Source of the DNA: Chlorokybus atmophyticus
Taxonomy: Eukaryota > Plantae > Mesostigma and Chlorokybus algae
Direction of reading: 5' to 3'
Assembly: GCA_009103225.1 (NCBI GenBank)
Contig: RHPI01000260.1
Location: 630,203-694,202 of the forward strand
DNA length: 64,000 nt
Position numbers and translations under genes: made by a program. Under the pieces are notes generated by a model that saw only the letters and a program-made list of their open reading frames with translations, was not told where the DNA came from and made no database searches. This document shows, one piece after another, positions 19,523-53,332 of the stretch (positions are counted from its first letter, which is position 1; every line of letters starts with the position of its first letter).

Positions 19523-19598
19523 GCAAATGGATACCTGCTTGGGCCAGGCTAGCCTAGCGCAGCCTGGGCCAGGCCAGGTTAGGGGCCAACGCCCAAAC

Positions 19599-19614
19599 AA
19601 ACCCTAACCCTAAC
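19599..19614. promoter_or_regulatory. Telo-box-like motif AAACCCTAACCCTAAC in the DeSI / orphan-gene divergent promoter
   Basis: Telomere-like repeat about 80 nt upstream of the DeSI ATG. The telo-box is an established plant promoter/5'UTR element. Confidence 0.55.
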
Positions 19615-20052
19615 TCCGCCTCCGCCTTCTCCAGCTCAGCCTCCACGCCATCATCCACCTCCACCTCCGCCTCCACCGCCGTCTCCCCGCTGCCCCTGGC
19701 AATCGTTCGTCACCAAGCTATCTCACTGCTTCATCCCAGCGACGCCACCCCCACCGCCACCACCCCCACCGCCACCGCCACCGCCGCAGGCTACCGCATT
19801 AAACTCTAAATGCATACTTTCTGGTCTGGTGTTCCGTACAGTGCCTGTGAGCGTTGTCTCAGAGCGTTGCTGCCAGCATTGCAGGACAGAGGAGGCATTG
19901 TTGGCGACAATATTCTTTGTAGCCTGTTAAGATTCTTAACGCGCCGCTCAACTTGCGCTTAACTTCAGCGGACGCTCTGGTCACGTGACGTTGCTGAACC
20001 TTTTGGTTAAGTCGGCTAACTTCTCGGAGAAAACTAACCGCGGTTGTCAGGC

Positions 20053-23000
20053 ATGGCGCCACGTGGCGGAAGGGGGGCGGCGGCGGCGGCGGCGGCGGCA
20101 TCGCCACCACCCGTGTCGCCAGATTGGGATCCCAACGCCACTTGGCCCCGCAGACACGCTCGCTCGCCCCCCGCCGCCGCCTCCCCTCCACAACCACCAC
20201 CTCAACCACCGCCTCAGGACTCTGAAATTCACCTGGAAGCATCTGTCAGGTAAGGTTACACAGGTGCTATACGCAATCCAATCAGAGTGGATGTGAACAT
20301 ATTATGAATCTCAAGTGTGTATGTGTATTCAGGCGGCATGAGAAGGAGGTGGCTGCATTGTTGTGGACGCGAGTGGCTCGGCCAGGCTTGTCCTCCCTCT
20401 CCCTGGTGATAATGCAGTGCAGGATGAATAGTTCTGAGAGACTGTATAGCAATTGGCACGTATAACCATGTGCTATAAACATTGACATGCTTATATGCGC
20501 TTGCAGGAAGGGGATGGTGGCGCTGGCGCGGTGCTTGGGCGGTGGCTGGCTCGCGGGGGCGTAGCGCGCTGCAGCGTCTACCTCGCCTGCTGCGAAGTAC
20601 GTGGTGTGACGACTGAGATTCCCCACCACCTCACGTACACACACATGCGCTCACGCACACGCATACGCACACGCACACTCACAGGCGCACACGCACATGC
20701 ATATGCATACGCACACGCACACGCAGACACTCTTGCACATCCCTAAACAGGTGGTCTTACAAGACCTGCAAGAAGAAGAGCGAGAAGCACAGGAAGGAGA
20801 AGGAGAAGGAGAAGGAGCAGAAGGGCCCGGGTTTGGGTCCGTCTCCGGTTCTGGGTCCGGGTTCGGTACCCAAACACAGTTGGGTCCCGTACCCGCCAAC
20901 AGTAGCAGCACCAAGAAGAAAGGTCCTCTCTCCCCACGCATGCGCCAACTGCAGGCAAGTGCAAGTATGAGACCATGATGTTGAGAGCTGTACTGAATGT
21001 TGCTCTCTCTTTTTGTGTTGTCATTTGCACCAACAGAGGCAGGAATCAACGGACCTGCGCTACGGGCTTCTGCTGTCGGACACGTCCAGCGATGAGGAGG
21101 GACCCACGTCGGCGGGACCCGTCGCTAAAGCTGCGTGGCGAGAACTCGTCGCTGGTACGTGTGAACGATGTGCACCCGATGTGCACCCCTTGCGTCGTGT
21201 GGGAGCGTGCGTGCATGTGTGTACGTGAAACGTGTGCGCACAGCCGTATGCTCACATTTTACACACCGTACAACCGCACGACACTGTAGTACAACCATGT
21301 GCGCATGCGCGTGTACATGTATGTGCGTGCATGCGTGCGAGCATATGTGTGTGTATCATGCTACCAACACCTATCAACATTGTGCAGAGGCGGCTTTGGG
21401 AGCTGCGGTAGCGAGGGTGATGCAGAACCGGACGCTTCCCGCGCCAGCATACCCCGACAGCAACAACATCAACAACAGCTTCAGCCACCACAACAACAAG
21501 GCGAAGAGGGCGGGTGAGAGGGCGGCGAGGGCCGCGGGTGCGCTCGCGTGGGTCGTGGAGAACTATCCCAGCTACCCACTTGAGGTATGTGTGTATGTGA
21601 CAAAGTCACTCACCTTTGCCTATATTTTTCATTGATCATCAATATGTGAAACATGCAAATTGTTATGGCCAGGATGGAGCCTCTGAGATGGAGCGGCGAT
21701 GCCTCTTTGCAGTTGTGAAGTGGTAAGACAACACCATCATCATGTGTTTGTTCACCTGGATTCAGTGTGTCACATACCAATAGAACAGTACATATGGCAA
21801 TAATTTGTGGCAATGTGGCAGCTTGCATCAGCAGCCGCTGCCGGCGGACGTGCGCCAGCTGGCCGCCTGCGCTCTCGCCCTCATGCCTTGTAAGCGCATG
21901 TTGGTGTGTTTTATGTTGATGTGGTCACGAAACGCAACCACATGCCTTGCGTGTCCACACACCACCACGGCAGCCAGAAGGCAACATTTGTTGTCATGTG
22001 TGTCGAGCAACCATTGTTGTGCTCGCCTAACGCAGTGCCGGACTTGGTGGCGCTCATGTGCGTGGACGTCAAGGCGGGCTTATTGAAGGTGTGTCAGTGG
22101 GAATTGTCAACAACAACAACAACAGCACAACTATATGACCTGCATGAACTCATCACGCATGTTGTTATTCAGGGGGTTGAAAGCGACAATTCAAAGAGAT
22201 TTGCCCGCGAACAGCCAAGGCAGGCACTGATGACCGATTCATGACATGAGTTGCATATAGACCCCTCATGCTGTTACTTGGACTCAACCCCTCTCCTCAC
22301 TGATCTGTGAGGTCTTGTCATTTGTGTGACAATACTTCATTCATGTCTGTGAATGACAGGCTTCTGGAGTGGCTGCCACGGGCATGGACGGCCCGCTGCA
22401 CTCTTGCGGTAGGCAGACACAGTCCTTATCATCATACATCTATGAATTATACTCATTATTCCTCAAGAGGCCGTGTCATATACCAGCTGTAGCCGCATAG
22501 TCACGAATGGCACTGTTTTTCTTTTTTGGGGTTGAGTCATTGGAATGAACCAATTGCAGGGGTCGCTTGAGGACTTTGAGTGCAGAGAGCCCGACGCCTT
22601 TGAGGCGTGGAGATTACGGGTGGGTATCTATAGCAACGCGATGTGTGTACATAAATCTCCAAGACTACTGTGATGTGACCAAGCGCAGACGCAGTGCATA
22701 TTCATGAAATGCAACATACACCTCCACCATCAGCCGCAAGTTTTAGTTTTTTTTTGTTTTACTGCGACGGCAGGAGGTGCTCAAGACCAACAAGACACGG
22801 GCACAAGCGTACTCGCTGTTGACAGCACAACTAGGTGAGAAATGCATGGAACTCAATCCGACTTAGTAACGCACATAACAAATAAACTCCAGTTTTGGAT
22901 TTTATTTGTTATGCATTGTCATGAGTACCCCTCATTTCTCTTGCTCACAAGTAGATGACAGTAATGAATATACATGGGCAAAAGATCACATCTACTTCAT

Positions 23001-42855: not shown

Positions 42856-44834
42856 CTACTTGACGCATTTGTACATGGTGCGGTTGAACCCAACAGTGCT
42901 TCCCGGTGTGGCGTCCGTGATGACGTCGACGGAAGTGAAGCCCACCTCATCCTTGAGATAATCCGGGAACTGGTCTGGGTAAATTCGCATCAACTTAAAG
43001 TTCTCTTTGGCTGTCTCAGACACATTGCGCTTGGACTTGTAGGACGATATCGGCTGCGGCTCCAGGATCAGAACTCCACCAGGACTCAAACTCTGCATAA
43101 ACAAGGTACAAAGCATTTATAGCTGTAGCGCATCTGAGCTGTAGCGCATGTTGATGGTAGGTCTGAAAGGCAATGATACATAAGGCAAACTACTTGCTTT
43201 GTGTATCTTGTTGAATAGCTTCATGATGCCTTCGTCGCCCCAATTAAGGTGTATCCATTTGGTCACGCTCAAGCTGCCAAGACACCCATCAGCTATCGCA
43301 TTGTAGCACAGTGCATGAGGCCATCAATGCGCATGTTCCGGAAAAGGCAATCACTCACTTGCATTACATTAAGTTAGGGAGGCACAGAGATCAATGAGCT
43401 TGATAGTTGCGCCCCTCTCAACCACAATGACTCTGCTGACGGACCATTAACAGCAAGACGCCGACAACACGCTAACAGCATGTAAACAAGACAGCAATTA
43501 GCGTACCACAGTATGACGTCCCAGCGGCCTCCGTCGCCAGCTACATCTCGTTCCACGTAGTTCTCACGACGGAATGACACATTCTCGGGGTACGTGTCGA
43601 TTGATAGCGGCGCAGCGCCATCACTGGACGCGCGTAGCCGCTGCTGCTCTTGCCTCAAGTGAGAGCGTGCACTGGAGATCAACACTGCAGATATAGACAT
43701 ATGCGCTCAATTATGGACTGAACCGGATAAGCAAGCATTCCCTGTCACCATGAATGCTGAGTGCATCAGTAAGGCACTTGACAGCCCACACATATCTGTA
43801 CATATACATGAGCACCTGCACCAGATTCAGGCACATGCCAGCACTCCAACGCGCTACCAACCACTTCAATTTCCTACCCACCACCGCTTGCTCACCAATG
43901 TCAATGTCAATGCCGAGTGCTTCCATGCAGCTGAACCTCTCCGCTGACACATTACAAGAACAGTTGACTTGAATAACTGTCATTGCAAAACAGCACACAT
44001 GCAAGGGTGTGGTAGGACTGGGTGGGGGAGGAGCCCTTAGCTGAAGGCAAGTGAAGCAAGCTCGCTTACCAACGGCGAGCGTGATGAGGCCCTCATTGCA
44101 GCCGATATCCAGCAGGCGCTTGCCCTCAAACCACTCGCGCTGCAGCAGCCGAAGGCGAGGGTCCTCCTCCAGCGTCTTGCCTAGCTGGGCCAGGAGAGCG
44201 GAGATAAAGACATGCACTAGTCTAAATATGCTCACATGTTGTGTACATCGATGCGCCAAGTATCCTTGGGCATTTAGAGGCATGCATGCATGTGCGCGTG
44301 TTGAACGCTTGTGAGCACAGTGTTCAACCAGTACAAATGCAATACATGCTTGTGTGCAGCTCCACAGGTGACAGGTGGCAGGACGAAGCAGCACTTGATC
44401 CGGATGATCGTTGTGCTTGCTGACATGTGTTGCTCTCAAGATGCGCATGCATGCCACACTGAACTCACCCTATAGCCATAGTAGCTATGATAGTTGCCGT
44501 ATATAAACGCCTCCTTTTTGCGCTTCTGCTTGTCCTTCTGCTGCTTGGCGGTCCCAGCCTGACCTTTGCGCTGCAGTTGATGGAACAAGCTTGGGGCGAA
44601 GGCGTTGTGCTGCTCGCCTTTGCGCTTCTTGTTGTCAGGCTTGGCTGGATTCCTGTCATCCTCTTCAACAACCGTAGCCTGTTCGTCAGCAGCACCGCCG
44701 CCTCCACCGTCCTCCCTGGCCACCTCTTCCCTGGCCTGGTCACTGACCTCCACTACAGCAGCAGCTGCTGCAGCAGTAGAAGCTACTACTTCCGCACTGC
44801 TGCATACCACATGCAAACCCCGCTTCCTCCTCAT
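42856..44834 (-). CDS. MEPCE: Bin3/MEPCE-type RNA 5'-methylphosphate capping methyltransferase (At5g51130-like)
   Basis: FIYGNYHSYYGYR, EDPRLRLL...WFEGKRLLDIGCNEGLIT, YPENVSFRRENYV, LSVTKWIHLNWGDEG, PGGVLILEPQP. Start codon uncertain. Confidence 0.92.
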
Positions 44835-44968
44835 CACCTCCAAACCAGCCGACCCAACGCCGCCACCGCCACCGCCACCGCTGCCGCCGCTGCCCCAGTA
44901 CAGTGTTAAGGCACAGTGCATTGGACGCTACAGTGGCATTGCTAGTCAATACACCGCATTGACTGACA

Positions 44969-44977
44969 TTAGGGTTT
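44969..44977. promoter_or_regulatory. Telo-box TTAGGGTTT in the MEPCE / TRAPPC4 divergent promoter
   Basis: Exact reverse complement of AAACCCTAA, lying between the two start codons. Confidence 0.55.
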
Positions 44978-45112
44978 CTAACAGAAATCTTCTCTGTGCC
45001 ATTTGTTGTGGCACCTTTTGTCCAGGAGGTTGCGGCGGGGAGGCGGTGGCGGTGGATGTGTTTGTGGCTGGCATTATGCTGTCGTTGTTCAGCGTAGTTG
45101 TTGTCTGAGGGC

Positions 45113-45892
45113 ATGTCGTCGTCGTCCTCCGGGCCGTCTCTTATCTTCTCCCTCTACGTCATCAACAAGTCCGGCGGGCTGATCTACAACAAGGTGTGTG
45201 CTTTTGGGGAGGTTGTTGTGTGGTGCAGTAAGCACAGTGTTTTTCTGTCGAGCTTGAGATTGAGGGTTGCCAATGGCTGTAAGCAGGATTTTGCGGCCAT
45301 AGTGAAGCTTGACACAAACGACTGCCTACGTTTGGCATCCATTTGGCACTCCCTGCACGCCATATCCAAGGAGCTGTCTCCGGTGCCGGGTTGCACAGGC
45401 ATTGAAACGCTTGAGGCTGACACTTTCGACCTCCATTGCTATCAAACGCTCACTGGTATGAACACTGGCAATCATCACCATATATGTGTGCACGGTCTTA
45501 TTGCCGCTCCACACATGTCATCTAGCCCGGGGTAGGGTTGTTTATGGTGCACCGTGTGTCTTGTTTTGGCGTTGCGAGTGTCGTCACGCGCGTGTTGATA
45601 ACACTGGTACAGCACTTGCGCTTTGCACTGCTATGCAGGTGACACGCTCAAAACATTTTGTTATGGGATGTTTACCTGAAGTGCATACTCTTGTTATGCA
45701 GGCACAAAGTTTTTTGTGACCACAGAGCCCAAAGCGCAGAACGTCGAGGCCCTGTTGAAAGTGATATACGAGCTGTACGCGGAGTACGTGCTAAAAAATC
45801 CGTTCTACGAGGTGGAGATGCCCATTCGCGTCGAGCTGTTTGACCAACATTTGGCTCAAGCAGTGCGCCGTGACAAGGTTGCTGGGCGCTGA
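45113..45892 (+). CDS. TRAPPC4: Trafficking protein particle complex subunit 4 (Trs23), 3 exons, 146 aa
   Basis: Exons 45113-45193, 45287-45455 and 45702-45892 (441 nt): SLYVINKSGGLIY...DTNDCLRLASIWHSLHAIS...LEADTFDLHCYQTLTGTKFF...YELYAEYVLKNPFYEVEMPIRVELFD. Confidence 0.96.
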
Positions 45893-45967
45893 AGAGGGTG
45901 GGAATAGAGTTGAAGTAGTTGGGGTTTCGCCGGGCGGTTTTCCGAGTGCACAGCGATAACAGCCGCA

Positions 45968-46606
45968 ATGGATTGGGGGAATGTGACGGCAGATGAGCTG
46001 ATATCAGCGCTCCGGGAGGTTGATTGGCGCATGCCTCCGCGTCCGCTAACCGAATTTTTCAGTGTCAGTCGATTTGCCGTGCCGGGAAGCCGCGACAAGT
46101 GGCTGTCCAGGGTCAAGTGCAATGTGTACTACTACCGCACCAACTACTTTGGCATGGTGCTGTTGTGCCTCGGAGTTGCCTTCGCCCGCAACATGCTTTC
46201 CATCTTTCCGGTCTGCCTGACCGCTTTTGCCCTTCTCTGCACCAACGACACCTTCGCCATGGCCATCAATGAGCAGCTCACGCGGCTCGTGCGCTCTATC
46301 AACCCGCCGCTTGCATCAAAGCTCCGGGCTCCATTGGCAGGGCCGGGGAAGTCGGGCTCTCGGCAGTCCCTGTACATACTGGGTCAGAAGCGACAACATG
46401 TTGTTGTGGAGCTGTCGGTGGCCAGCGCGGGGCTCCTTTACTTGACGAGCGCTGTTGTCACGGTGGCCGGTGGGCTTCTGTTAGGTCTAGGTGCAACACT
46501 GCTGCACGCCTCGCTGCGCACGCCAAATCTTAAGGCCCGCCTCAGCAGCTATCGAGCTGACTTTCGTGCGGTGTGGCGCGGCAACAATTCCTTTGCAGAC
46601 TTGTAG
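45968..46606 (+). CDS. PRA1: Prenylated Rab acceptor PRA1 family protein (plant PRA1.A type), intronless, 212 aa
   Basis: MDWGNVTADELISALREVDW...PPRPLTEFFS...RVKCNVYYYRTNY...LLHASLRTPNLKARL matches the plant PRA1.A clade N-terminus. Confidence 0.95.
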   Translation: MDWGNVTADELISALREVDWRMPPRPLTEFFSVSRFAVPGSRDKWLSRVKCNVYYYRTNYFGMVLLCLGVAFARNMLSIFPVCLTAFALLCTNDTFAMAINEQLTRLVRSINPPLASKLRAPLAGPGKSGSRQSLYILGQKRQHVVVELSVASAGLLYLTSAVVTVAGGLLLGLGATLLHASLRTPNLKARLSSYRADFRAVWRGNNSFADL

Positions 46607-47343
46607 TGCGTTGTGATGGGCAGTTCTGGACACCTTCTGCTCAACTTGCCATGTTTTGGGCCTGCGTGCTTTGCTCTTAAGGGGTGCAGTTGTGTTGGTT
46701 TCAACCAATTCCTGTAACTAGTTCGTCGGTTATAGTTCGACACTATGGAGTGCAGCAAGTGGAGTGTCAGCCACACAGCTTTGAATATAATGCTTGTGCA
46801 TGTGCTTATATGTTGTCCAGCCCTTATCAGATACGCATCTGGCAGGTAAACAACTCATGACTGGTGCATGCCGTGTGCATGGATTGGTTGCATGCATGAC
46901 ATCTCCGTTGCATCTTGTGTTACACGAGATGTGTACGCAAGTTGTGTACACAAGAGTTGCATAATAGTGAATGCTAAGGTCGGTAGCTATGCAAGTGCAG
47001 CACCAGCAGACGAGATAGGTAGGCACATAGGACTCGAGTGGGACCAAGACAGAGTTAAGCACAACACTAGCACACATTGGGAGTAAAACATATAGGAGTA
47101 AGACTCTATCACTGCTAGACCCTCATGTAGCAACGGTGGGGCTGTAGCAAGCATGGAGATAGCACGGGTACGTAGAGGCAAGCACATGCAGAGCGCAGCA
47201 GGCAGATCTAGAGGTAAAGGTTAGCCCATGGAGTACAAGCGCTCGCAGCATGCACAATGACATAGACGAACACGTTGATGTCACAATATCGACATCATTA
47301 CGACCTGACAAACAAATGTATCACCTGACCTAAGACTCAAGGC

Positions 47344-47392
47344 GTTGTAAGCTTACAACACCTAAATGTTGGAATGTTGTAGCTTACAACAC
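47344..47392. repeat. Tandem pair of palindromes GTTGTAAGCTTACAAC / GTTGTAGCTTACAAC
   Basis: Perfect 16-bp palindrome at 47344-47359 and a copy with one base deleted starting at 47376. Confidence 0.85.
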
Positions 47393-48603
47393 GTTTTGAC
47401 AGAAACGGCATCACCTGTCTGAGGAAGGAAGGCCACACCCTCTGGCCTCAAGCACATCATGTGCGACACGGAGTGACGCTTGCACGCTGCGGCACGCACA
47501 TTTGAGATGGTAGGGGAGCTCCGGCCACAGTAACCGCACGGTGTGATGGGGCCTCGATTGCGGCCCTGTTGTGATATGTAAGGGCCTTTCAATATCCACT
47601 GGCAAGACACCTCACGCAGGTGGCACTATCGTAGTGTTCTGAATTGTTCGTGACGAGCAACGAGAAGATATATAGGAATTATTTCGTCAATACCCCGCAA
47701 AACTATGTTCATTGCAGTGTATATGCAATGGAATGGACTGCATACTAGGTAGTTGCTGCCGCCGAGCAGGGGGAGTTCAGTTGATACACTGCACTTGCAT
47801 AATTACTTATTTTACAAACAATTCGTGGCACTACAATAGTTTGCCACTTGCGTGGGCCTAGTCTACTGGTGCAGCATAAGATGCTCATCAGCAACCGGAG
47901 TTCAACTATTCGTTTCCAACCAGGACATTCGATGCTTATGGCTCCATAGACAGTGTGCCAACTCTAAAAGCACATATCGGATTATGCGAGCAAGTGGTAA
48001 CATGACATTTCACATACCACAGTGACGAAATCACGGCAGTACTTTTTACAAAGAGATTAATTTGTGTAAAAAGTAGCGGCCACAAAGTTACTTTGTGGCA
48101 TTTCGTCAAAACCCTGTCATACTGTGCATTTTAGTCGCAAACCAGAAAAATGCACACTTGTCATCGGTGAGACAATTTGGCAAACTTGTTGACAACTTTA
48201 CACTTAGACTCATGATGTGTTTTTACATGGGTTCCTGAACACATATACCTGTAAGTTTTGCAAATCATATCAGTTCAAGTTTAATGGCCACTTGACTTGA
48301 AGATTGTTAAAGTAATAACACTTCGAAATCCACAATATTAATACAGTTCAGCCGTTATGTGCATATACACTAACATCATACAGTAATAATTATTACCGTT
48401 GAAATGCGATTGGTGCATAAGGTTCACCAACACAGAAGGCCAAACCGCGGGCAACATCCACTCGTTAGTCGCATATCTACGCTAAGTGCATATTCTCAAT
48501 GGGTTTACTAGGGGCACCAATGTCATGCACATATCGAGGTTTGACTGTATTGCGGTTTGCCAACTTGGCTTGACCCCTAAGAATGGACACTTTGATTGGC
48601 AAT

Positions 48604-48632
48604 TTTACAATGGTTTACAATGTTTTACAATG
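48604..48632. repeat. 10-bp tandem repeat (TTTACAATG core) x3
   Basis: tttacaatggtttacaatgttttacaatg. Confidence 0.85.
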
Positions 48633-49673
48633 CAATATAACAATAACAACATACAACCATTGTACACTCGAATAACCTGCAACCGTTGTCTTGATGTACT
48701 TATTTATAGTCATGACCAAACGCTTGCATAGCTATAGGCATTAGCTCTATGCTAGGCCACATCAACACCCTTGTGTGGAGACCTGTGCAGGAGATTGGGA
48801 CGTGTGACTGTGTGCTACTTCACCAAACATCACACATCTTGATAGGTGTACATAAGTACACACACAACCACATTCTTACCATCGCAGCGAGTAATGTAGA
48901 GTGCCTTTCTCTAGCCTATCGATGTCACAACAATGTTTATACATGAGCAGCCCATCAGCAAGTACCCGTGTTGGATGCATCAACTGTACGCATGCAATTG
49001 CTTATCTTTTGGTGACAACACTCTCACACAGATTTGGGATTGGGGCAATGCACGTAGAGGTTGAGTGTTCACAAAAGCAGAATGAGGTCGCAACACATTC
49101 TCAGGTAAAGAAATGCTGAGCACCAAATGAAGGTGTACAAACATGTACAAACAACGCGTAACTGCATTGTGGTAAATCACACAGAGCAAAGGTTGCAGAT
49201 GCTGCATTATAGCATGGTTATAGCAGGTACAGCAACCATGGTGTAGTGGCGTACATAGCGCCAGAAAGGTCATGTCAACTTGAACAACAAGTTGCTCAGC
49301 CCTACGTGCTACATGTACGCACTGCATAAGAATGGGAAGGCTCCTGCAGCAAGTTGACTGCCTACAGCTACGCGTACACAGCCAGGCACGACTGCTCTGG
49401 CCAGTAGAAACAAACACTACACGCCAGGCAAATTGCTGGCAGAGTGCTGTTCCACGAAATCTCTGTGCCCATACAGCTTGGGGCATGGACACACTCGGTG
49501 CCTCCAACAAGACCTGTACAAAACTTCCTACCTATGCGCCCCCCTGGCATGGTGCAATGCGGCACAAACCGGTTCAACAGCTTGCATGTAACGACTAGCC
49601 TGCAGGCCCCAATTGGCAGCTGAATGCCACCTGGCGCTTGGTAAGAGTGATGGAATGTCATATGCGCGCGTGA

Positions 49674-52340
49674 CTAGAACTCTCTCCGCTTAGTAGGGCC
49701 ATTTACAGCAGCAGCGAGCCACTTCTCAGCTTCCATTCGGCTTCTGACCTTCCTTGGGAAAGGACATCTCAAGGTGTGCATTTGGCCATTCTCGCATATC
49801 CGGATGTCAAACCCAAGCGTGTCTACGCGGCAAATGCGTGCTTCCTGCATATAACAGTTGCTCGTGAGTACTTGCTCAAGCAGAGCAGGACATGCATCTG
49901 CAAGACTCATACGGTGACTCACAACCAACTGAAGGTCACTGACTAACAAAATGTATATATACACAAACATCCTCATGCGACGCTCTCATGCCATGCATAC
50001 CTCAGGGTCCTTCGCAAACTTCTGCCTGCATAGCGTTTGCAGTGCCTTCAGATGGCGATTCTTGGTGTTGAAAGCTTGTACAATTGCATCTGACTCTCTG
50101 GCTAAGGCATCCGCCATACCCATGGCAAACTCGTCACCTGTCAGCACAAATACTCAGCACACCTGCCTTTAAACGCGCAACAAGTCTGCACTGATGCAGC
50201 CTGTGAATGTGCGCCTGGCAAGCCTCTACGGAACAAACAACACAGTTCACCACGCGCACCAGTTAAGTCAACTTGCTCGCCGGATGCCGTGTCAAGACGA
50301 ACATTCACTGGTCGCAGCCGGTAGAACTCGTCAGTTGCGCTGCGCTTTTGAACGAATCCGTTACTGCGGACAACATCAAAGTAGGTCTGATCCTCAGCAA
50401 CGGCTTTGCGCATGTCTTTGTCCGCAGGGAAATGACGGTGCCATGCAGCTGCTGCCGCTGCTTTCTGATGGACAGGAATTGGCGATATCTGCCCAGCAAG
50501 GGTGACTCTCCAGACAGGTGTATCCAGATCCTTGGCATACTCTGCAGTTGCCGCCTGCAATTCCAACCAACTATGAGATGCATGCAAAACGGAAAGCAAT
50601 GAAGCCTGGACGCAGGATGTCTCAATATGCTGGTAGACATATGCATGGTGGTTGACCATGCCAACGTACCCTGGCTACCCCGCAGCTGAACTCCAAGGGA
50701 TGCAGCAAAGCAAGTGTAGCTAAGTCTGTCCAGGTATTATAATCCACATCATAGCCACTGGCCTCTGCGGCGGAAGTCTCCGCCTGCGCCACTTCCCAAT
50801 TGGCAGCTATCATGTCATCTGTCGAAGCAAACTGACCATCTTCGTCCTGCTCCAACATGTTCTTGTTAGCACGCTGAAGGCATGCACTTGTGCATTGGCA
50901 TTCACACACAACAGTTAAAAGTACCTCGTCATCTTCATCCTCGTCATCTTGGTCGCTATCATCGTCATCACCAAGGACTACACCTGAGTAATTCTGATAA
51001 TGGTAGTTGTGGTCATCCAAATCCACAACGCCCTCGATTTCCACCTCCACCTCTACAGCCTCCACCAGGTTAACAACTTGCTGCAGTACGACATCGTCGC
51101 AGCTGCCAAAGCCCACCATCAACTGCACAAGCCCATCGTAAGCACCTCATGACACTACAGAACAGCCGCAAAATGCGCAGGCCACTGTGCAAATGACCAC
51201 GGCAACTTCGTGCAATTCATCACACGAGCTTGTTAACAATGGCTACCGAAACAACTTGCCAATCTAACCCTTAACAATGTCTGCCGGCAACAGTGCGTAC
51301 CATGCAGTTCGGGTCAGCAGCAAGGTTTCGCAGAATCGCTTGATCAGCTGGTATTCTGACAAGAATGTCACCAGACTCCTCCACCACGTATGGCATATCC
51401 ATGCCAACCGGCAACTCCCGATCAATGACAACGGCGCAGATCAGCACGCCCTGCGAGCTAGCCTCCGCAATTGAGCGTGCCCGGTCAGCAGACGTCAGCT
51501 CCGGAAGCTTTCGCTTATCTTCACAATACTCCCTGCAAGTAGATATGTGCAACGGGCTGTCATTGTCAAGCTCAAGTAATAGCTCGTGCTGTGCTCTGCA
51601 GACATCTCATAACTAAGTCTTACCTGAAGCCATCATTCTGAAATGACCAGCCTGATGTGTAAGATTGTTGCGGGGGCGTGCGAATGGCCAAAACTTGCTG
51701 TGAATGCGGCATGCGCACGATACTCGGCTTCCTGTCACAGCATCAAAATGGGTCAACCATATTGCAAAGCAGCCCCGCACGGCTGAGCAACCAACACGCA
51801 AGAAAAGTGAATGAGTGTTTGTTGGCAATACTACTGCCTGCCTTGAACCGAAACGACGTTCCCATAGCCAACCAGATACAACGTTTTAAATTGTAAACAA
51901 AGCAATTGTGAGCCAGACTGCCCAGATTGCGCTGCAACATTGCATGGATGAGGCGATTGGTAGTGAAGGTTGCTCAGGGTGGACATAACCGCCACGCAAC
52001 GTTGCAGCGTTGTTTGTGAGATCTTGGCAGGTGAATTCAGCACAGGGAGGCATTGGAAACACATCACGCAAAGACGCCATGCGACGAGATGAGGACGCAA
52101 AACAGCGTACCAGTGCTGCTAGAGCATGCATATCAACGCAAATAACCCGGCAAGAAACAGAACCGAGCTGTCCTTCGGCCGATCTCACTTGCACAACAAT
52201 GAGCGCTCACAGCCAAGTAAGCCATACCTTGGGCGCAGCAAGACAGTGCTCCCACAAAACCCTGCAGCTGAGCTGTCCACCCGCTTGGCGATCACGGCCT
52301 GGCGAGCTAGGGCGACGGGCACGCTCGCGGCGGCGGCCAT
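49674..52340 (-). CDS. At3g49140-like plastid protein (PNPOx/HugZ-like split barrel, acidic insert, C-terminal DUF2470-like domain)
   Basis: Transit-peptide-like MAAAASVPVALARQAVIAKR...; LTSADRARSIAE; DMPYVVEESGDILVRI; a D/E-rich insert; LATLALLHPLEFS; FYRLRPVNVRL; C-terminal VDTLGFDIRIC...TLRCPF...EAEKWL. Start may be 52361. Confidence 0.75.
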
Positions 52341-53332
52341 GGTAGCAGCTGGAGTGCTCATTGTCCTCACCAGAAGCAAGAAGCACGCCCGCACGGCCGA
52401 CGACACCACCACCACCACCGCCCCCGCCGCTGCCCTTTTTCCCGCTTTCGTTGGATACACACACCCTACACACTGTAGATGGTCCCGTCAAAAAGAGATC
52501 GTGGTTATAGGCTACGAGACTGTGCGCCTCGAGTAGCGCTTCTCTCTTTTTATTGCCGCGGTTAAATCACGCCTCAAATTTTGTATTTTCGCAAAGTTGG
52601 CGGCGCGAAAGTCCAGTTGCGGCAACTCACCGGCCCGCAACTCCCACGTAGGTTTGGCTGCCCGCTCGTGATCGTTAGCTGTGGCCGCGCACCGCGCGCC
52701 TCCAGCGCGGACTGTCAGCAGCAAGCCCCAAAAAGTGTGCTGTGCGAGCGTCGCTTTCCTCGCTTTCGAAAACTCACCCGCCAATTATTACCCGCGTCAC
52801 GACAATTTCAAATGAGTTCGCTCAGTGTGGCCGGACCAAAAGCGCGACGCGCATTGCGCTTTATGGAGAGGCCTCCGCGGCAGGGCATCCTCATGATAGG
52901 CCTTGCCCATGTGCCGTGGGCGCTAGGCTCCTTTTGAATGCGCGGACCGTTCAAATTACATGACCAACGTACCGGTAATGTTTGAATAGATACCGCACCG
53001 TTTTGCCCAAAAGAGCGGGACCAATGAATTTGACGGACCCAACCAAATCAACTGCCCGCATTCTAATCGTGTTTCATGGAAGCCGATTGAACGTGTGAAC
53101 AGTTCAATCGATCCGGTTGCTGACGGGGGTTTCTCTAGACCTAGTTGTGCATCGGAGGAGGCGGCCTGTTGCGCACTGCGGATCTGCGGCCATTACGCGG
53201 GCGGGCATTGTCCTCACAGGCGACAGCCTTGTTTGCCAGCGTGTTGTCCACTGCGTCGCCTCCTTGATCGCTGGCGTGGTAGTGGATGTCGCCCTTGTCC
53301 TGGGCTATCCTGCTGCTGGCACTTTGGGCGTT

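Follow-up and report, generated by a model that had tools for sequence, protein, structure and literature searches.

A probable TRAPPC4-PRA1 bicistron in the nuclear genome of the streptophyte alga Chlorokybus atmophyticus

In the streptophyte alga Chlorokybus atmophyticus, a spliced TRAPPC4 gene is followed by an intronless PRA1 gene, and the two assemble as one RNA, an arrangement that is well supported as a nuclear bicistron and is a new, lineage-specific example of a layout (two proteins, one mRNA) already known from green algae. TRAPPC4 belongs to the core of TRAPP, a Rab-GEF complex, and PRA1.A/ARL6IP5-type proteins are membrane proteins of the prenylated-Rab-acceptor family.

Organization of the locus and identity of the two proteins

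The two ORFs lie on the same strand without overlap, both are conserved, and each has its own start and stop. All coordinates refer to the window, that is, the whole stretch of 64,000 nucleotides that was analysed, and X1 to X4 denote the samples whose RNA contigs were compared with the locus. The features are as follows:

44970..44977, no strand assigned: perfect copy of the telo-box word TAGGGTTT, some 65 nt 5' of where the contigs begin and within the short divergent promoter region
45038..45112, + strand: 5' leader of the bicistronic RNA, 71-75 nt (contig 5' ends at 45038 in X2 and 45042 in X1)
45056..45097, + strand: uORF1, 13 codons, weak context cggtggATGt, in the frame of ORF1 and closed by TAG; inside the X1 and X2 contigs
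45076..45108, + strand: uORF2, 10 codons, ggcattATGc (A at -3); inside the X1 and X2 contigs
45113..45193, + strand: TRAPPC4 (ORF1) exon 1; splice joint in X1, X2, and X3 contigs
45194..45286, + strand: intron 1, 93 nt, GT..AG; spliced out in contigs from three runs
45287..45455, + strand: TRAPPC4 exon 2; Sybindin match at 4e-14, covered by contigs
45456..45701, + strand: intron 2, 246 nt, GT..AG; without contig coverage
45702..45892, + strand: TRAPPC4 exon 3; sole internal ATG at 45818, stop TGA at 45890-45892
45893..45967, + strand: inter-ORF spacer, 75 nt; unbroken coverage by the X1 and X2 contigs
45968..46606, + strand: PRA1.A-type ORF2, 212 aa, intronless, full length; PF03208, end-to-end alignment
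46607..46802, + strand: 3' UTR; contigs end at 46743 (X2) and 46802 (X1)

The three TRAPPC4 exons total 441 nt and encode 146 aa, and the spliced model translates into exactly the annotated protein Chrsp12S02014 of Chlorokybus atmophyticus (100% identity), which bears out the guess of the first-pass annotation that the DNA came from a streptophyte-type alga. The exons match PF04099 (140 positions) at 1-17, 26-81, and 84-139, and the matches of the model carry the name TRAPP complex subunit 4. Judged from its sequence, ORF1 is assigned to TRAPPC4 (Trs23) in the short plant-type form, with a predicted Sybindin domain over its whole length and without the PDZ-like insert. ORF2 contains PF03208 (109 bits, 1.4e-31), its best matches are named PRA1 family protein A1 with identities of 50-54%, and its alignment with streptophyte PRA1.A orthologues begins at M1-D2-W3, reaches the C-terminus, and contains 71 invariant columns, M1-D2-W3 among them. 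It is accordingly classified as a predicted member of PRA1 subfamily A (plant PRA1.A; animal ARL6IP5/PRAF3-like), with Rab binding as a putative property. The PRA1 gene at this locus has so far been unannotated, and the exact ORF2 protein sequence is absent from a public collection of 15 billion proteins.

Re-derivation from the sequence confirmed the gap first reported: 75 ATG-free nt separate the last base of the TRAPPC4 stop (45892) from the ATG of PRA1 (45968). The spacer also carries three in-frame stops of the TAG and TGA types, and a TRAPPC4-PRA1 readthrough fusion is therefore ruled out. The nearest plausible coding sequence 3' of PRA1 lies about 3 kb away, and neighbouring ORF fragments gave zero Pfam matches. 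Searching 44000-47600 against Rfam (E <= 0.1) gave no match; the folding stability of the spacer (z = -0.96) and leader is not unusual and thus lends no support to an IRES-like element.

Spliced RNA contigs that span both cistrons

The RNA data consist of short-read assembly contigs aligned to the locus. A single contig of 1422 nt from X1 (2013, study P1) extends from 45042 to 46802, and one of 1391 nt from X2 (2021, study P2) extends from 45038 to 46743; each spans both ORFs, lacks both TRAPPC4 introns, and crosses the spacer without interruption. Two independent studies thus each provide a single contig in support of the proposed co-transcription of the two genes as one spliced RNA. In the X2 contig an Illumina adapter directly adjoins 45038, and the 5' ends obtained by the two studies, eight years apart, agree within 4 nt. 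No contig covers intron 2, the spacer shows no loose end, poly(A) branch, or separate contig in either sample, the flanking intergenic DNA has no contig coverage, and no spliced-leader joint was seen in the RNA contigs. The other two Chlorokybus samples, X3 and X4, yielded only small TRAPPC4 pieces or nothing. Such contigs represent continuous coverage and not single molecules, and they would not reveal a start specific to PRA1 if it lay within exon 3 or the spacer.

RNA contigs and genome run colinearly from 45701 onward to the 3' end, and this colinearity, together with the continuous ORF, agrees with the earlier description of PRA1 as intronless. Chara PRA1.A is intronless as well, which weakens this feature as an argument for a bicistron. 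Within the 3' UTR, TGTAA occurs at 46713 and the sole A-rich AAUAAA-like element, AATATAA, at 46784. Past the ORF1 stop, elements of these two types are confined to the sequence 3' of PRA1, and each precedes a contig end by 18-30 nt. The + strand has TGTAA at three positions only, 45278 (intron 1), 46713, and 47346. The first-pass annotation had argued from TGTAA that no poly(A) signal separates the two genes. Its observations hold, with no copy in the spacer and one past PRA1, but UGUAA has no established role as a poly(A) signal in streptophytes, and Wodniok et al. 2007 found it restricted to chlorophytes.

ATG depletion and start contexts

Exactly one internal ATG exists in ORF1 in any frame, at CDS +366 (genomic 45818), where it encodes the Met of the EMP motif and opens a frame of 25 codons ending 75 nt before PRA1. 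The first-pass annotation had noted this single ATG against roughly 6-7 expected at random, and mononucleotide shuffles of ORF1 agree (mean 6.0 ATG, P = 0.013). Synonymous-codon resampling that preserves the protein gave a mean of 4.5 (P = 0.015). Codon-order shuffles gave a mean of 3.1 at a P of only 0.09, a result that counts against the proposed reading. ORF1 and spacer together contain 1 ATG in 513 nt (P about 0.015), and of all windows of that length on the two strands of the 64 kb, only 0.03% have no more than one ATG. The ATG-free run of 363 nt from the ORF1 start to the internal ATG exceeds any on the + strand of the window. Internal ATGs number 7, 10, and 11 in three transcript-derived CDSs of monocistronic TRAPPC4 orthologues, and out-of-frame ATGs number 5-7 in orthologues compared with 0 in Chlorokybus ORF1. 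In the diverged X3 lineage, all 7 differences in TRAPPC4 exon 2 are synonymous third-position changes, none of which creates an ATG.

The depletion claim nevertheless has to be narrowed in two respects. First, its in-frame share is ordinary, since 24% of 87 aligned short-form TRAPPC4 proteins have no more than one internal Met. A loss of Met in favour of Leu had been suspected at particular TRAPPC4 positions; however, Met reaches at least 25% of the 87 orthologues in only two columns, the cited positions are Met in under 25%, and Mesostigma TRAPPC4 has the same Leu residues (KLDTND, HSLHAIS), so that this suggestion is not upheld. Second, the leader has two upstream ATGs that the first-pass annotation overlooked. 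Leader, ORF1, and spacer together contain 3 ATG in 588 nt versus about 10 predicted by the long-ORF density of 1.8 per 100 nt in the window; the region before ORF2 is ATG-depleted, not ATG-free.

The start contexts were quoted correctly in the first-pass annotation, although the description of the ORF1 context as weak is overstated: with G at -3 and T at +4, gagggcATGt appears to be intermediate. The ORF2 start, agccgcaATGg, has G at both -3 and +4.

Proposed mechanism and alternative explanations

It is probable that one promoter, one twice-spliced pre-mRNA, polyadenylation only past PRA1, and translation of ORF2 by leaky scanning together account for the whole locus. A single promoter would lie 5' of 45038, in the short region between the divergent genes. 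The perfect telo-box word TAGGGTTT in that region has 4 + 1 copies in the 64 kb, about the chance level, so that any function of it would be conjectural. Its pre-mRNA would undergo two splices within TRAPPC4 and polyadenylation at about 46743-46802, producing a mature mRNA of about 1.4 kb composed of ORF1, the ATG-free spacer, and ORF2. Some 40S subunits would pass over the ORF1 AUG (purine at -3 but T at +4) as well as the lone internal AUG, and would then initiate at the better-placed ORF2 AUG; leaky scanning is inferred here by analogy with chlorophyte bicistrons. ORF1 appears to have lost its out-of-frame ATGs once the two genes were joined. Two features of the RNA speak against leaky scanning in its simple form from the cap, namely the two leader uATGs, one of which has A at -3, and an ORF1 start context that is not clearly weak.

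In one alternative, the same bicistronic RNA is translated at ORF2 mainly by reinitiation, so that ribosomes translate uORF2, bypass the TRAPPC4 AUG because they have not yet regained competence, and restart at PRA1. Some of them might first translate the short frame opened by the internal AUG at 45818, and the TRAPPC4:PRA1 ratio would on this view be governed by the uORFs. Both uATGs are inside both RNA contigs, and uORF2, with its A at -3, has a stop that ends 4 nt 5' of the TRAPPC4 ATG. The dual uORFs of the KSHV ORF35-37 mRNA reportedly allow ribosomes to bypass the first cistron, and GCN4/ATF4-type control operates by delayed reinitiation through uORFs; the Chlorokybus leader resembles both in having short uORFs that end at or near the first-cistron AUG and could divert ribosomes, although the likeness is one of analogy only. 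However, the true cap sites of some molecules could lie downstream of the uATGs, and experiments in chlorophytes, where bicistronic 5' UTRs are ATG-poor, favour leaky scanning (Duenas et al. 2025, PMC11892635). Reinitiation as the main route to ORF2 is considered unlikely.

A second alternative concerns transcription, with two overlapping or abutting units in which TRAPPC4 reads through PRA1, PRA1 protein derives mainly from a shorter mRNA starting in exon 3 or the spacer, and the bicistronic RNA is a by-product ("incompletely polycistronic"). Nested or minor 5' ends of this kind are not visible in the contigs, mono- and polycistronic transcripts coexist at many loci (Gallaher et al. 2021, PMC7896298), and the linkage is not conserved elsewhere. 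Against these points, intron 2 is uncovered and neither study yielded a separate contig or loose end in the spacer, promoter and 5' UTR of PRA1 would have just 75 nt, and ATG depletion across ORF1 and the spacer would be purposeless if ORF2 were never reached by scanning through ORF1. The spacer word TTGGGGTTT, proposed earlier as a telo-box-like mark of an independent PRA1 promoter, proved not to be a telo-box; a perfect copy lies at 44970, upstream of the transcript 5' end. Two separate units thus seem a doubtful explanation. An artefactual origin of the joined contigs, through chimeric assembly or through genomic DNA in the libraries, is highly improbable even though the RNA nature of the runs is presumed, as both introns are missing at exact GT..AG borders, indicating spliced RNA, the same structure with concordant 5' ends recurs in both studies, and flanking intergenic DNA is uncovered.

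Lineage-specific distribution and relationship to known systems

The linkage was found in no other alga or plant examined. PRA1 was sought 3' of TRAPPC4 orthologues by called genes and tblastn, and it was not downstream in transcripts L003-L007 or at loci L001/L002, L009/L010 (Trebouxia), and L011 (Chlamydomonas incerta). From the PRA1 side, the Chara locus (L008) has no TRAPPC4 within 10 kb, and the Physcomitrium locus (L012) offers nothing closer than a Sedlin-type subunit, whose gene lies on the opposite strand at a distance of 7.5 kb. Linkage is thereby absent in Chara, Physcomitrium, Trebouxia, Chlamydomonas incerta, and three transcript sets, and also, as judged by gene or scaffold names, in Mesostigma (where TRAPPC4 and PRA1 have unrelated gene numbers), Spirogloea, and Mesotaenium. 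The arrangement looks lineage-specific on these sequence comparisons, with Chlorokybus alone so far, and co-expression therefore has no comparative support.

Exclusively polycistronic nuclear loci have been described in chlorophytes (Gallaher et al. 2021, PMC7896298; Duenas et al. 2025, PMC11892635), with median inter-ORF distances of 40-183 nt in bicistrons compared to 2.5-3.4 kb between colinear genes, and leaky scanning has been shown experimentally at such bicistrons (PMC11892635). The Chlorokybus locus resembles them in carrying two conserved ORFs on what appears to be one spliced mRNA with ORF1 smaller than ORF2, in its spacer of 75 nt and 5' UTR of about 75 nt, which like the relative ORF sizes agree with the published medians, in the depletion of AUGs ahead of ORF2, and in an ORF2 start context better than that of ORF1. 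It differs in that its host is a streptophyte (Chlorokybophyceae), its leader contains two uATGs, its linkage is not kept in other lineages, and it is known from short-read contigs and sequence. Neither TRAPP, PRA1, nor the pair is mentioned in the main text of either chlorophyte study or in 7 supplements of Duenas et al. 2025. A literature search returned no paper combining Chlorokybus with bicistronic, and the papers combining it with polycistronic were, by title and abstract, mostly on organelle genomes or unrelated.

In the streptophyte line, the documented case found is CDC26-TTM3, a deeply conserved bicistron that land plants share with green algae (PMC11892635). TRAPPC4-PRA1 shares with it a small ORF1 ahead of a larger ORF2 on a bicistronic mRNA; in contrast, it is so far restricted to Chlorokybus, and its ORF1 is a 146-aa housekeeping protein instead of a very short, peptide-like one. 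The operons of nematodes and kinetoplastids are transcribed as precursors that are cut into monocistronic mRNAs by trans-splicing. Co-transcription of neighbouring genes from one promoter would be common to these operons and Chlorokybus, whereas the mature spliced Chlorokybus RNA still has both ORFs.

Implications

The Chlorokybus locus adds a well-supported case from the earliest-branching streptophyte class, and a lineage-specific case of this kind can show how bicistrons arise and how ORF1 adapts. The public protein set lacks Chlorokybus PRA1.A, probably as a result of gene callers accepting a single ORF per transcript, and inferences of gene loss in Chlorokybus may accordingly be wrong wherever a second cistron has escaped notice. 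That both genes act in membrane traffic is suggestive but may be chance, and many algal bicistron pairs are functionally unrelated (Duenas et al. 2025, PMC11892635).

A broader and quite speculative idea, to which we give little credence, is that Chlorokybus repeatedly builds bicistrons by the landing of an intronless copy (here PRA1.A) within the 3' UTR of an intron-containing gene, followed by an ATG purge of ORF1. Intronlessness of ORF2 would be selected because no exon-junction complex would then lie past the ORF1 stop, allowing the mRNA to escape nonsense-mediated decay, and short uORFs ending at the ORF1 AUG would tune the number of ribosomes continuing to ORF2. If true, recurrence of intronless second cistrons would constitute a general rule for the building of eukaryotic "operons" in the plant lineage.

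Transcript evidence for a TRAPPC4-PRA1 bicistron

TRAPPC4 (ORF1) and a PRA1.A-type gene (ORF2) lie in tandem on the plus strand, and the coordinates and counts of the first-pass annotation, which had proposed a bicistronic transcript here, were all correct (three-exon TRAPPC4, stop at 45892, 75-nt ATG-free spacer, PRA1 at 45968). Two Chlorokybus RNA runs, X1 and X2, from different studies (P1 and P2), contain contigs spanning both genes.

Features of the locus (window coordinates)
45056-45097, plus: uORF1, 13 codons, weak context
45076-45108, plus: uORF2, 10 codons, A at -3, ending 4 nt before the TRAPPC4 ATG
45113-45193, 45287-45455, 45702-45892, plus: TRAPPC4 (ORF1) exons, 441 nt, 146 aa
45892, plus: end of the TRAPPC4 stop
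45893-45967, plus: inter-ORF spacer, 75 nt, zero ATG
45968-46606, plus: PRA1 (ORF2), unbroken 639-nt ORF; PF03208 PRA1, 109 bits
45042-45191, 45285-45454, 45701-46802: X1 contig (2013, study P1), single, 1422 nt
45038-45191, 45285-45454, 45701-46743: X2 contig (2021, study P2), single, 1391 nt
44060-44921, minus: divergent spliced gene; first ATG 44921, RNA contigs 44469-44771, intron 44183-44468

TRAPPC4 exons 1, 2 and 3 match positions 1-17, 26-81 and 84-139 of the 140 in Pfam Sybindin and the two introns between them, both GT..AG, measure 93 and 246 nt. In the X1 and X2 contigs both introns are removed at these GT..AG borders, so the contigs derive from spliced RNA; they run unbroken over the spacer and both ORFs, which bears out the placement of TRAPPC4 and PRA1 on one transcript. 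Two of six RNA runs contain two thirds of the sampled words, the share expected of a spliced transcript from this stretch. An Illumina adapter adjoins 45038 in X2, so a real fragment ends there, and no contig covers intron 2, 44772-45037 or the DNA past 46802 (to 47400). A third run, X3, yielded a 96%-identical TRAPPC4 piece whose splice joints agree; it differs at seven positions, every one a synonymous third-position change that creates no ATG. The bicistronic RNA is very probably the main product of the locus.

The proposed lack of a poly(A) signal before PRA1 holds, although the UGUAA argument behind it does not, as UGUAA is confined to derived chlorophytes and shows no positional preference in streptophytes, while AAUAAA-like signals are found in Mesostigma (Wodniok et al. 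2007). Downstream of the ORF1 stop a single A-rich sequence is AAUAAA-like, AATATAA at 46784, and the X1 contig ends 18 nt beyond it; the spacer offers just AATAGA. The X2 contig ends 30 nt past the TGTAA at 46713. Folding was not unusual in the spacer (z = -0.96) or leader (z = -0.44), and an Rfam scan gave no match.

Depletion of ATG in ORF1

The claim that ORF1 holds a single internal ATG against roughly six to seven expected was confirmed: the only one, at 45818, is in frame, none is out of frame, and mononucleotide shuffles contained a mean of 6.0 (P = 0.013). Synonymous-codon resampling, with the same protein and the window's codon usage, gave a mean of 4.5 (P = 0.015), and codon-order shuffles 3.1 (P = 0.09). 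At most one ATG occurs in only 0.03% of all 513-nt windows (both strands, 64 kb), and the ATG-free 363 nt from the ORF1 start codon to the internal ATG exceed every ATG-free run on the window's plus strand. Because three orthologous TRAPPC4 CDSs, each from a monocistronic transcript, contain 7, 10 and 11 internal ATGs, with 5-7 out of frame where ORF1 has zero, the depletion signal resides in the out-of-frame ATGs. Its in-frame part is not special; internal Met residues in 86 other short-form orthologues have a median of 2, with at most one in 24%. The suggested Met-to-Leu losses were not sustained, the positions in question being Met in less than a quarter of sequences and Mesostigma having the same Leu residues.

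The window's other ATG-poorest stretches are 52200-52880 (both strands) and 19540-20270 (plus), with at most 2 ATG per 513 nt and GC about 0.6; its longest ATG-free run is 52359-52852 on the minus strand.

Translation of the second cistron

In the best-supported reading, one promoter would give one spliced, polyadenylated mRNA of about 1.4 kb encoding two proteins, with ORF2 reached chiefly by leaky scanning. The locus resembles chlorophyte bicistrons (Gallaher et al. 2021, PMC7896298; Duenas et al. 2025, PMC11892635) in that the inter-ORF and the 5' UTR are short, ORF1 is the smaller of the two ORFs, AUGs are depleted upstream of ORF2 and ORF2 has the better start context, whereas their 5' UTRs are ATG-poor and the 71-75 nt Chlorokybus leader contains two uATGs, overlooked at first pass. 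Since leaky scanning has been demonstrated by mutagenesis in that family and, in view of the discussion in PMC11892635, reinitiation past an ORF of 146 codons should be inefficient, we somewhat favor leaky scanning as the main route. That ORF2 is translated from a bicistronic RNA, taken as a whole, is probable.

The ORF2 start context is indeed the stronger (G at -3, G at +4), and that of ORF1, first described as weak, ranks as intermediate with its G at -3 and T at +4; both were graded by the general Kozak rule and not a Chlorokybus consensus.

A live alternative is that reinitiation after the uORFs, bypassing the TRAPPC4 ATG, contributes to ORF2 translation, a route opened by the two uATGs. 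It is also possible that a nested PRA1-only transcript starts in exon 3 or the spacer, as short-read contigs represent continuous coverage and not single molecules; no RNA contig has a loose end within the spacer. The two ORF ATGs share one frame, and a readthrough fusion is excluded by an in-frame TAG and TGA after the ORF1 stop.

TRAPP is a Rab GEF, and PRA1 family members are prenylated-Rab acceptors. Their family names suggest a functionally coherent pair; among named proteins, ORF2 is closest to the PRA1.A/ARL6IP5 type. In many bicistrons the partners are unrelated in function (Duenas et al. 2025, PMC11892635). The feature is real and adds to a phenomenon already described; what is new is the gene pair, the streptophyte host, a conserved gene hidden from annotation and the apparent youth of the unit.

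Protein identities and distribution

The spliced TRAPPC4 model is identical at 146/146 residues to its best match, jgi/Chlat1/1482/Chrsp12S02014 (EukProt EP00898, Chlorokybus atmophyticus), which validates the suspected streptophyte-type host; Chlorokybus and Mesostigma form the earliest-branching class of streptophyte algae. No close match was found for PRA1, the best being PRA1.A proteins (50-56% identical) of Mesotaenium, Chara, Physcomitrium, Mesostigma and land plants. It aligns with PRA1.A orthologues from M1-D2-W3 through the C-terminus, with 71 invariant columns. Its exact sequence is absent from a 15-billion-protein collection in which its partner from the same mRNA does occur, as the EukProt Chlorokybus entry. 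The orthologue is thus intact, yet seems to have escaped public annotation, and genome annotation may systematically overlook second cistrons.

The linkage is not conserved in the compared algae and plants, so the unit is, as far as can be seen, restricted to the Chlorokybus lineage. No TRAPPC4 lies within 10 kb of Chara PRA1.A, the two Chara genes being on separate contigs; unrelated genes follow TRAPPC4 in Trebouxia and Chlamydomonas incerta; and gene or scaffold names place the two separately in Spirogloea, Mesotaenium and Mesostigma. Five TRAPPC4 transcripts of other taxa each carry a single cistron and have ATG-rich 3' UTRs. PRA1 is intronless as described, but this is not peculiar, since Chara braunii PRA1.A (L008:10001-10633, BFEA01000001.1; 633 nt) is likewise intronless; Physcomitrium PRA1.A1 has at least 6 introns and no TRAPPC4 nearby.

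In Physcomitrium patens (CM009328.2), the DNA upstream of PRA1.A1 (L012:8001-11165, plus) holds, about 7.5 kb away and on the other strand, a gene for a Sedlin_N-type TRAPP small subunit (L012:1-547, minus); a PIG-L gene separates the two. The translation of the subunit gene (MIVCVAVVGHN... and ...KFHYIVHCSLDVIEEK) is presumably TRAPPC2L-like. A TRAPP subunit beside PRA1.A in a second streptophyte is curious and may be chance.

Flanking DNA

The first ATG of the divergent gene is about 117 nt from the TRAPPC4 transcript 5' end. Its Gly/Ala-rich N-terminus is encoded by a GCC/GGC repeat (44851-44898), which was left out of RNA-read placement. Fragments of this gene had no Pfam match; we take its motifs YGNYHSYYGYR and LLDIGCNEGLITL to be reminiscent of Bin3/MePCE methyltransferases. 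The spacer word TTGGGGTTT, once considered telo-box-like, is not a telo-box; a perfect one, TAGGGTTT, occurs at 44970, between the transcript 5' end and the minus-strand gene.

About 3 kb 3' of PRA1 (46800-50100) is without a long ORF, compared with the 75-nt gap within the bicistron. At 47344-47391, apparently non-coding DNA holds a perfect 16-nt palindrome, GTTGTAAGCTTACAAC, and, 17 nt beyond it, a near copy, GTTGTAGCTTACAAC.
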